A DNA stretch of 63,983 nucleotides, filler included, from Olpidium bornovanus S191 (taxonomy: Eukaryota; Fungi; Olpidiomycota): NCBI GenBank assembly GCA_017911155.1. It is 27 parts of 27 records of this genome, joined end to end, with 100 filler letters (N's around TTAATTAATTAA, not from the genome) between each part and the next. Parts side by side here need not be neighbours in the genome. Positions count along the whole stretch, not along the records: positions 28,305 to 30,258 come from JAEFCI010003299.1; 26 more parts are not named here. One strand, written 5' to 3'. Numbering within the stretch: position 1 is the stretch's first letter; each line of letters starts with the position of its first letter. A program made the position numbers and the translations under genes. The notes beneath the pieces are model-generated. The model ran no database searches, was not told the DNA's origin, and worked only from the letters and a program-made list of their open reading frames with translations. This document shows, in pieces, positions 28,203-30,372 of this stretch.

Positions 28203-28453
28203 CGNNNNNNNNNNNNNNNNNNNNNNNNNNNNNNNNNNNNNNNNNNNNTTAATTAATTAANNNNNNNNNNNNNNNNNNNNNNNNNNNNNNNNNNNNNNNN
28301 NNNNACCGTCCGGCGTGGTCCGCACTCAAAAGATAGTCCCTTCGACAGAGTTTAGCAGACGGTTCCGCAAAGCCTCCAATCCAACAAAATGTTCAGAAAC
28401 GTGCGCAAGTCTGGGGAAACGCATGATGTCGTTTGCCTGCACGGCAGACAGCG

Positions 28454-28529
28454 TCAGATATTATCTACAACAAAAGGCTCCACACATATCTTCGGAGAAG
28501 TTTCCCAATTGCTTTATGTCGCCATTCTT
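28454..28529 (-). ncRNA. Box C/D snoRNA paralog 1 (degenerate, possible pseudogene), intronic
   Basis: Minus strand: ATGGCGA (decayed box C)...TTGGGAAACTTCT-CCGA...TAGATAATAT-CTGA. It lies in a predicted intron GTGAAT(28569)...TTTCCCCAG(28411). Confidence 0.6.
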
Positions 28530-29006
28530 ATGCAGTGATCACGCGCCGCCTCCAAATTACAACATTCACCCAGAATGACCGCCTGCTTCAAAAGGATTCT
28601 ATCCTGTTCCGTCCTTAGCTGTGTTCACACGCGCACCAGAGAAGTTCCGGCTTCCTTTGCTCCGCGTTGAAAGAACCGTCGTCGGGCCGTTTTAGAAAGA
28701 ACCCGCAGATGTTGCTCTCCCATACATTCGCGGTCAATCGCTTTCCGTAATTTGAAATTCAACTGTCCGAAGCAGAAACCTAACAGAAAAAGCGACGGCG
28801 TAAGAATCTTTATAGTTGCTGCCAACAGCAGCGTCTTTTCAACAGGCACACTTACGCAAAAACTTCAGACGTGCGCAAGACACTCTTCTACAGAACAACC
28901 GCCAATTCAAAGCAGATTGCAAGGTCTGAAGGGAGCACAAAAACACGACGTTAAGATCGTAATAAATCCGCGGCTTCGCTGGCTCCTCAATCATCAAAGC
29001 ACAATA

Positions 29007-29080
29007 TCAGATACTATCTATCAAAAAACCAGCTCCACATGAAATTTTCAGAGAGATTCCCAATATTTGGTCATCATTCC
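29007..29080 (-). ncRNA. Box C/D snoRNA paralog 2 (dual guide, SNORD79-like D' guide plus snR65-like D guide), intronic
   Basis: Minus strand: GCACAGGA-ATGATGA-CCAAATAT-TGGGAATCTCT-CTGA...GATAGATAGTAT-CTGA-TATTGTGC. Canonical boxes C, D' and D, a GCACA/TGTGC terminal stem, and guides complementary to LSU rRNA GAGAUUCCCA and UACUAUCUA. It lies in intron GTAAGT(29129)...CCCTTCAG(28926). Confidence 0.88.
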
Positions 29081-29276
29081 TGTGCAGCGCTGAGTCCCCT
29101 CCCCTCCACCTGCAACCCACGGACTTACTTCCAGTGACCTTGCCCTTGTGAATTGCTTGCGCAAGAAGCAATTGGTAAAACATCAGCGTATGGTGAGGCC
29201 TGTGAAGAACGTGCAGAATGACACAAAAATGAGCTTCTCGGGAGACCGTTCATGCCACTGTTCGAGCGCGGCAAGC

Positions 29277-29351
29277 TCAGATTTTATCTTATCAAAAATC
29301 TTCCACACGAAAGTTCGGAGAGATTCCCAATTGCATTGCGTCATCATTCTT
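29277..29351 (-). ncRNA. Box C/D snoRNA paralog 3 (D' guide intact, D guide decayed), intronic
   Basis: Minus strand: ATGATGA-CGCAATGCAAT-TGGGAATCTCT-CCGA...GATAAGATAAAAT-CTGA. It lies in intron GTCAGT(29390)...TTCTTCACAG(29200). Confidence 0.82.
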
Positions 29352-29668
29352 CGCCTATTACTCTGCAAACATTAAGCCACCTGGACTGACCTCAGGACGG
29401 AAAAAAAAATATGGCAACGTCGGCCACCAACCCGATGTTGCATCCCAGGCATCGAAATAGAATCCAAGTCGTCACACGCAGAGACAGGAGGCTGCTCTCC
29501 GTCAGGGTGTCTCCGCCGCGAAGCGGCCCTCCGGAGTGAAAGCCGTTCACCAAAAGTGCTCGAAATCAGTGGCAGTAACCCCTGGGTCTGCGAATACGAC
29601 GGCAAAACGCAAAAAAATAAGCCTCGGAAGGTCGGACTGTATCACGACGGCAACTTAATAGGCTAAAA

Positions 29669-29737
29669 TCAGATACTATCTATTATAAAGTTCCTCCACG
29701 ACGTTTCGGAGAGATTCCCAATTGCTTCGCATCATTT
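29669..29737 (-). ncRNA. Box C/D snoRNA paralog 4 (both guides intact, box C variant), intronic
   Basis: Minus strand: ATGATGC-GAAGCAAT-TGGGAATCTCT-CCGA...AATAGATAGTAT-CTGA, with a flanking TAGGTT/AGCCTA stem. It lies in intron GTAGGA(29778)...TATTCGCAG(29588). Confidence 0.8.
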
Positions 29738-30199
29738 CGAGCAAACCTAGGGCTTGACCTAGGGAACCACAATCCTACCTTTGGCAACGTCATCTGACAA
29801 TTTGACGGCGACCTAAAAGAAGCGACTGGTAAAGATTAGGGCGGACAGGAACTGTACTGGTTCGAAGACAAACAGCAGCGGTTGCTCAGCACTGACCGGA
29901 AAATTCAAGTTTCGTTTGTCCGGGGTTGGGGGGGGGGGAAGGGGTGTGAAGAAGGGCGCGAAGCACCTGGCAGGCACCTCGAGAGGGCGAGCGCGGGTGC
30001 CCGCAAGAGCGGAACCAGGCGCGGAGAACGACCGGCAGCCACAGTTGCTTGCGCGCGACTCCAGCGCCCCGACAAACCGGGCGTGTTACCGTGACGGGGC
30101 CCGGGAAGGCAGGGCAGACGTTCGCGGGAGGAGGGGCGCATTTTTGTTTACGGTTTGGAAAGTTTTCGGGGGAAGAAGTAGAGGGTGGGAAGGGCAGTA

Positions 30200-30242
<43 letters not shown>

Positions 30243-30372
30243 CCCCCGGCCGCCCAAGNNNNNNNNNNNNNNNNNNNNNNNNNNNNNNNNNNNNNNNNNN
30301 NNTTAATTAATTAANNNNNNNNNNNNNNNNNNNNNNNNNNNNNNNNNNNNNNNNNNNNCCCCTTTCACGCAG

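Follow-up and report, generated by a model that had tools for sequence, protein, structure and literature searches.

A tandem array of box C/D snoRNA genes in Olpidium bornovanus with predicted guides for two neighbouring LSU rRNA sites

The window, which is the whole analyzed stretch of 63,983 nucleotides (27 joined parts of the Olpidium bornovanus S191 assembly GCA_017911155.1, filler included), contains four paralogous box C/D snoRNA genes. They lie head to tail on the minus strand of the piece at 28305-30258 (JAEFCI010003299.1) and are designated A to D. Their guides suggest that this is probably a tandem dual-guide array, in which the D′ guide would be aimed at A2326 of the large-subunit (LSU) rRNA and the D guide of copies B and D at U2347 (yeast numbering). 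The initial annotation had described one snoRNA within 29007-29737. That range holds three genes (B, C, and D), since it is bounded by box D of copy B and box C of copy D, and the fourth gene, A, lies outside it at 28446-28551. Both guide strings given in that annotation are present on the minus strand.

Layout of the snoRNA gene array

Start-to-start spacings between the four units are 392, 270, and 553 nt, and no convincing reading frame was found anywhere in piece 28305-30258. Every unit has a 5′ box C, a 3′ box D, and complementary flanks, together with an internal D′-like box and a degenerate C′ box (UGUGGAG, UGUGGAA, or GUGGAGG) that lacks the consensus GA. Box C reads AUGAUGA in copies B and C, AUGAUGC in D, and GUGAUCA in A. 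Box D is CUGA in four of four copies; D′ is CUGA in B only and CCGA in A, C, and D. All four copies thus show the features by which box C/D snoRNAs are recognized, namely a box C, a CUGA box D, and a terminal stem in a unit of about 60-100 nt.

Copy B (28999-29085, minus strand) is the most canonical, with AUGAUGA, CUGA, and CUGA boxes enclosed by a 6-bp terminal stem (29085-29080 with 29004-28999). Its box C (AUGAUGA, 29077-29071) is followed by the D′ guide UUGGGAAUCUCU at 29063-29052, the D′ box CUGA at 29051-29048, a degenerate C′ box (UGUGGAG, about 29039-29033), the D guide GAUAGAUAGUAU at 29022-29011, and the D box CUGA at 29010-29007, all on the minus strand. Copy C (29268-29356, minus) kept the D′ guide and diverged in the D guide. 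It comprises box C AUGAUGA (29347-29341), a D′ guide identical to that of B and D (29330-29319), the D′ box CCGA (29318-29315), the C′ box UGUGGAA (29307-29301), the diverged D guide GAUAAGAUAAAAU (29293-29281), and the D box CUGA (29280-29277). Copy D (29661-29748, minus) has both guides as in B, with box C AUGAUGC at 29735-29729, the D′ guide at 29721-29710, the D′ box CCGA at 29709-29706, the C′ box at about 29700-29694, the D guide AUAGAUAGUAU at 29683-29673, and the D box CUGA at 29672-29669. The terminal stems of C and D, paired by eye, have six pairs with a bulge or mismatch, the stem of D containing one mismatch.

It is hardly credible that the array consists only of decaying or silent duplicates of a functional gene located elsewhere in the genome. 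The loss of the ancestral box C in copy A and of the D guide in copy C, as well as the final C in box C of copy D, would be expected under such decay, and RNA reads from four runs gave zero placements over the whole piece, a result that is uninformative on expression. However, copy B is fully canonical, a terminal stem is kept in all copies, and B, C, and D have exactly the same 12-nt D′ guide and box D, despite the divergence of their loops and flanks to roughly 60-70% identity.

Copy A (28446-28551, minus) is the diverged paralog, altered in box C and in both guides. Its ancestral box C has decayed to AUGGCGA (28525-28519), which lacks the A required for the sheared G-A pair. A second motif, GUGAUCA (28542-28536), lies 17 nt upstream of the decayed box and is associated with an 8-bp terminal stem; this upstream motif and stem could have replaced the original box C. 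The remaining elements are the D′ guide UUGGGAAACUUCU (28508-28496), the D′ box CCGA (28495-28492), the C′ box UGUGGAG (28484-28478), the D guide (28471-28458), and the D box CUGA (28457-28454). A few substitutions and an indel have turned the D′ guide from GGGAAUCUCU into GGGAAACUUCU. The altered guide no longer fits A2326, and instead forms 10 bp in register with LSU GAAGUUUCCC, where it would select G953 (yeast numbering). The D guide of copy A forms 7 bp only, at U2340. We know of no yeast or human Nm at the equivalent of G953. The Arabidopsis Nm table likewise has no methylation entry at this position. Copy A may be either a retargeted paralog or a decaying gene or pseudogene.

An additional snoRNA between copies B and A, running from UUGAUGA near 28995 to CUGA near 28868, was considered and rejected: it has a terminal stem of only 3 bp, it encroaches on the stem of copy B, and the guide matches nothing in the rRNAs.

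The piece also contains a recurrent 8-mer, CUUGCGCA, on the minus strand at 29165-29158, 28879-28872, and 28409-28402. These sites lie downstream of three of the copies, at 112 nt from box D for C, 128 nt for B, and 45 nt for A. About 0.03 occurrences per strand would be expected by chance. The occurrences at 28879-28872 and 28409-28402 lengthen to CUUGCGCACGU, and that at 29165-29158 lies within a short hairpin with the arms AAUUGCUU and AAGCAAUU. The 8-mer showed no rRNA complementarity of more than 7 nt; it may have been left over from the duplicated unit, or act as a 3′ processing or termination element. Upstream of the array in the minus-strand sense, a block at 29880-30258 has about 60% G+C, with a G run at about 29925-29937 on the plus strand and a T run of about 46 nt at 30193-30240 (plus), which reads as poly(A) on the minus strand. 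This block might act as a promoter, or it could mark where a neighbouring transcript or retro-element ends.

Pairing of the guides with LSU rRNA

Guides were evaluated by contiguous Watson-Crick pairs covering the fifth nucleotide from the box, using the rRNAs of a eukaryotic rDNA unit (L123) as targets. According to Rfam, this unit is complete (SSU of 1800 nt, 5.8S, LSU of 3396 nt, and 5S on the opposite strand), and numbering along its LSU gives back A2326, C2337, and U2347. The pairings described below are those with this yeast-type reference LSU and a conserved 38-nt segment, rather than with Olpidium's own rRNA. The 38-nt segment, taken from the initial annotation, occurs exactly in at least 86 contigs of a prokaryote genome collection (bacterial and archaeal genomes and MAGs). 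The two that were checked, L123 and L134, are complete yeast-type rDNA units by Rfam, which points to contamination of those prokaryote assemblies by eukaryotic rDNA.

The D′ guide, identical in copies B, C, and D, forms 10 contiguous pairs with LSU GAGAUUCCCA of L123, and the D+5 rule places the target at A2326, as had been proposed from the sequence when the guide was assigned to the SNORD79 site. A run of this length was reached anywhere in 18S, 5.8S, or 25S by 31 of 2000 composition-matched shuffles (1.6%). A2326 of yeast is the SNORD79 site, and it corresponds to Arabidopsis Am2327 and to human Am3830, which we take to be the same as Am3809 of the older numbering. In human 28S, SNORD79 is assigned to Am3830 and SNORD74 to Cm3841, 11 nt downstream; the yeast Nm list does not contain Am2326. 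The D′ guide is also identical to the guide of the Rfam SNORD79 consensus. The same guide was found in plant snoR44_J54 loci scoring above the gathering threshold (contig L038) and, among the matches listed, in about ten snoRNA-like loci of eukaryotic metagenome contigs. The classification of the D′ guide of B, C, and D as a SNORD79-type guide is solid.

The D guide of copies B and D forms 9 bp in register with UACUAUCUA of L123, selecting U2347. A2326 and U2347 are 21 nt apart, the distance given in the initial annotation, and the duplexes at GAGAUUCCCA and UACUAUCUA are separated by 11 nt on the same rRNA strand. The assignment of this guide to the snR65 site was borne out for copies B and D, but it does not extend to the whole array: the D guide of copy A differs, and that of copy C (GAUAAGAUAAAAU) has diverged and showed no match of more than 7 bp in the rRNAs of L123. 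The D duplex consists of 9 Watson-Crick pairs, two of them G-C, and is thus short and AU-rich. In copy B, the pairing resumes after one mismatch into GCGAAA for 5 more pairs, and 14 of 18 positions are paired with the U2347 region when G-U is allowed. Both the D′ guide and the D guide of B and D therefore provide an antisense element of about 9 nt or more with a plausible site at the fifth pair. Guide duplexes with experimental support are mostly 10-14 bp, and duplexes of 7-8 bp have been accepted for detected Arabidopsis Nm sites (PMC8053127).

The literature agrees with the two sites as named, SNORD79 being listed for human Am3830 and snR65 for yeast 25S U2347. Deletion of snR65 abolishes Um at U2347 (2345 in the numbering of that paper, 2347 in the usual one). 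No Um appears in the human list at a distance of 21 nt downstream of Am3830, and the Arabidopsis table has no Nm at the U2347 equivalent.

The D match could be fortuitous; the genes would then resemble vertebrate SNORD79 in being single guides whose AU-rich D spacer is an orphan. We consider this improbable. Taken alone, the D match is weak, because 169-172 of 2000 composition-matched shuffles (8.5%) equal it somewhere in 18S, 5.8S, or 25S. However, a match within 40 nt of A2326 was obtained in only 54-92 of 50000 shuffles (0.11% for copy B and 0.18% for copy D), and given this closeness to the D′ target, a chance origin seems unlikely. Furthermore, copies B and D share a run of 16 identical nt that spans the D guide and box D, but diverge in the adjoining spacer and in the loop, and the 5 pairs that copy B adds beyond its mismatch likewise speak against a fortuitous match. 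Selection is weaker on the D guide than on the D′ guide, since the D guide was lost in one of the three intact paralogs.

Relation to known snoRNA families and metagenomic relatives

In the Rfam scan of the window, all matches were sub-threshold, with 22-28 bits against gathering scores of 46-47. For SNORD79 (RF00152, threshold 47), copies D, B, and C scored 24.2, 23.4, and 22.2 bits, respectively, with alignments that rest on box C, the guide UGGGAAUCUCUC, and D′; copy B also matched SNORD111 with 27.7 bits. With the same library, two contigs, L109 (49.6) and L100 (76.2), passed the SNORD79 threshold. L100 appears to be an animal-type snoRNA-host locus with SNORD79, 74, 75, 47, and snR60-type genes, and it could be vertebrate. 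SNORD79, SNORD74, and snoR44_J54 form one Rfam clan, CL00069. The copies in the window have the guide of this clan, their likeness to metagenomic relatives reaches beyond the guide, and SNORD79 is the best or near-best match in three of the three intact copies, at sub-threshold scores throughout. The snoR44_J54 family is defined by guides for the A2326 and C2337 equivalents, and no GGGACA-type guide for the latter was found in any copy. The genes were filed in the clan and in neither family, because they fall short of the SNORD79 threshold and lack a C2337 guide. They appear to belong to the SNORD79/SNORD74/snoR44 lineage, being closest to SNORD79 in guide position and to snoR44 in dual-guide logic.

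Vertebrate SNORD79 (U79) resembles the window genes in size, in its guide upstream of D′ with the core UGGGAAUCUCU followed by CUGA, in the LSU adenosine that it targets, and in a degenerate C′ box of the UGNNGA type. It differs in the D spacer, which in the Rfam consensus is AU-rich and carries no snR65-site guide, whereas the D spacer in the window fits a second rRNA site. The absence of such a guide from the consensus is also what a fortuitous D match would predict. The genomic setting differs as well: the window genes form a tandem paralog array in ORF-free sequence, whereas vertebrates have one SNORD79 copy, in an intron of GAS5.

The plant family snoR44/J54/Z268 (RF00357) is a closer parallel in logic. 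In Arabidopsis, SnoR44 has been assigned by RiboMeth-seq to both A2327 and C2338. It is among six snoRNAs with two guides on sites 11-18 nt apart, for which simultaneous binding is possible, and dual guides at this distance can bind at once (PMC8053127). Thus, a dual guide on this rRNA segment is already catalogued. The plant RNAs and the window genes have in common the dual guide, the same adenosine (A2327), and a second site downstream on the same strand, and plant loci are tandemly duplicated in clusters (L038). The arrangement is different. In plant snoR44, the A-site guide lies upstream of box D and its partner upstream of D′, directed at C2338 (the snR64/SNORD74 site) 11 nt away, whereas in the window the A-site guide lies upstream of D′ and its partner is directed at U2347, 21 nt away.

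The likeness to snR65 of Saccharomyces cerevisiae is confined to the target nucleotide. snR65 is listed for U2347 alone, and no snR65-like family appeared in the Rfam scan of the window with E up to 10. The term "snR65-type" is thus best taken here to denote the same target site, with no claim of homology.

A metagenome scan with box C plus the D′ guide returned at least 120 loci, most of which were chance matches in bacterial coding sequence; about ten well-formed C/D snoRNAs were among the matches listed. By the Rfam gathering threshold, L109 is SNORD79, and L038 contains two plant snoR44_J54 copies in a snoRNA cluster, in which box D is preceded by the A2326 guide, and a CAGA D′ box by a GGGACA guide that fits C2337. 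The loci on L020, L114, L003, L069, L095, L059, L071, and L109 share with the window genes the same box C, the D′ guide, a D′ box of CUGA or CCGA, and a similar stretch from D′ to C′. L003 and L114 closely resemble copy B between D′ and C′, and L003 is identical to it at 17 of 19 positions of this stretch, a likeness beyond the guide that argues for true homology. Loci closely similar to that on L114 are found on L003, L069, L095, and L116, which are contigs of uncultured eukaryotes.

Among the matches listed, none of these relatives has the U2347 register of the window genes. The D guide of L020 (737-817, plus strand) forms 9 bp with UCUACUAUC; its target, A2345, precedes the snR65 site by 2 nt. 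This guide has the GAUAGUA core in common with the window D guide, placed 2 nt further from box D. The L020 snoRNA is probably intronic; the ORF fragments on either side of it resemble a DEAD/DEAH-box helicase, with a Pfam score of 17.4 bits that falls short of the cut-off. The D guide of L114 (3215-3303, minus strand) forms 10 bp with UUAACGAGAU and selects A2320, which is one nucleotide from the U30/SNORD30 site. The two guides of L114 are unable to bind simultaneously, because both overlap one rRNA stretch. The D guides of the other relatives showed no match of 9 bp or more.

These relatives bear on a fortuitous D match from both sides. Such a match would be in keeping with the lack of a D target of 9 bp or more in most metagenomic homologs, among the matches listed, and with the zero matches returned when metagenomes were scanned for the exact guide pair of the window in one RNA; yet L020 and L114 are independently aimed at the same neighbourhood.

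The initial annotation had further seen in these genes the union of a vertebrate site with a yeast site, possibly an ancestral state that was later split or partly lost. The union applies to copies B and D, which hold both guides, and not to A or C. An ancestral origin finds no support: in the metagenome scans the guide pair did not recur, and the D guide was different or without a match in the roughly ten relatives listed. As the partner guide differs in other eukaryotic contigs (A2345, A2320, or no match), the pairing of A2326 with U2347 is probably lineage-specific rather than ancestral. Neither the literature nor the metagenomes searched contained a SNORD79-site guide combined with an snR65-site guide. 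In fungi, guides are documented to split and merge, and the placing of snoR44 in one clan with SNORD74 and SNORD79 agrees with such events.

Proposed function and significance

If the dual-guide reading is correct, RNAs of about 75-90 nt would be released from a precursor or from separate transcripts. By analogy with other members of the family, each would assemble with Snu13, Nop56, Nop58, and fibrillarin on the C/D kink-turn. The D′ spacer of B, C, and D would then pair with GAGAUUCCCA and bring the fifth paired nucleotide, the last A of GAGA, into the methyltransferase site, and the D spacer of B and D would pair with UACUAUCUA and place U2347 in the second active site. The equivalent of A2326 would accordingly be methylated by the D′ module and that of U2347 by the D module of B and D. 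As both duplexes lie on one short rRNA segment, as in the plant dual guides, each could serve the other as accessory pairing, which is known in yeast and Arabidopsis (PMC8053127). In copy C, the D′ function alone would remain, and copy A would be decaying or retargeted.

Accessory pairing also forms the basis of an alternative that we regard as rather unlikely, namely that these are single-function snoRNAs in which only the D′ guide methylates (at A2326), the D pairing acts as an accessory or folding chaperone, and U2347 is unmethylated. Extra pairs of 7-15 bp beside the primary duplex, often formed by the other spacer, occur at 45 of 104 Arabidopsis Nm sites (PMC8053127). The modest length and AU-richness of the D duplex would suit such a role, as would the ability of copy C to manage without a D guide. 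The spread of related D spacers over A2320, A2345, and U2347 could likewise mean that nearby pairing was selected more than one particular Nm. Nevertheless, the D pairing starts at the second position from a perfect CUGA box D beside the terminal stem; this is the canonical geometry, and a duplex that forms there should be methylated. In L020, moreover, the core is shifted by 2 nt, yet the canonical register is kept. We retain the dual-guide reading as the more probable one.

More tentatively, and with some doubt, the comparison may be read more widely: within the SNORD79/snoR44 clan, the A2326 guide would be fixed across eukaryotes, with the second guide repeatedly re-aimed within a 30-nt LSU segment, at C2337 (plants), A2320 and A2345 (uncultured eukaryotes), and U2347 (the window genes). 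The array might then display re-aiming under way, copy C having dropped its second guide and copy A having acquired a new box C along with a D′ guide redirected to G953.

No concept is changed by these genes, as adjacent-site dual guides, guide splitting and merging, and accessory pairing are all documented (PMC8053127, PMC5824354). If the dual-guide reading is true, one RNA would install both the "yeast" Um2347 and the "animal/plant" Am2326 in Olpidium bornovanus. If confirmed, this would add a data point on the shuffling of rRNA methylation guides among snoRNA genes, in which a site with the dedicated guide snR65 in yeast is served by the spare guide of a SNORD79-type RNA. It would also support the view that what is conserved is the site rather than the gene, and that sites close to each other tend to be served jointly. 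With a full dual guide, a single guide, and a possibly retargeted copy side by side, the paralog array would offer a compact example of guide gain, loss, and switching.
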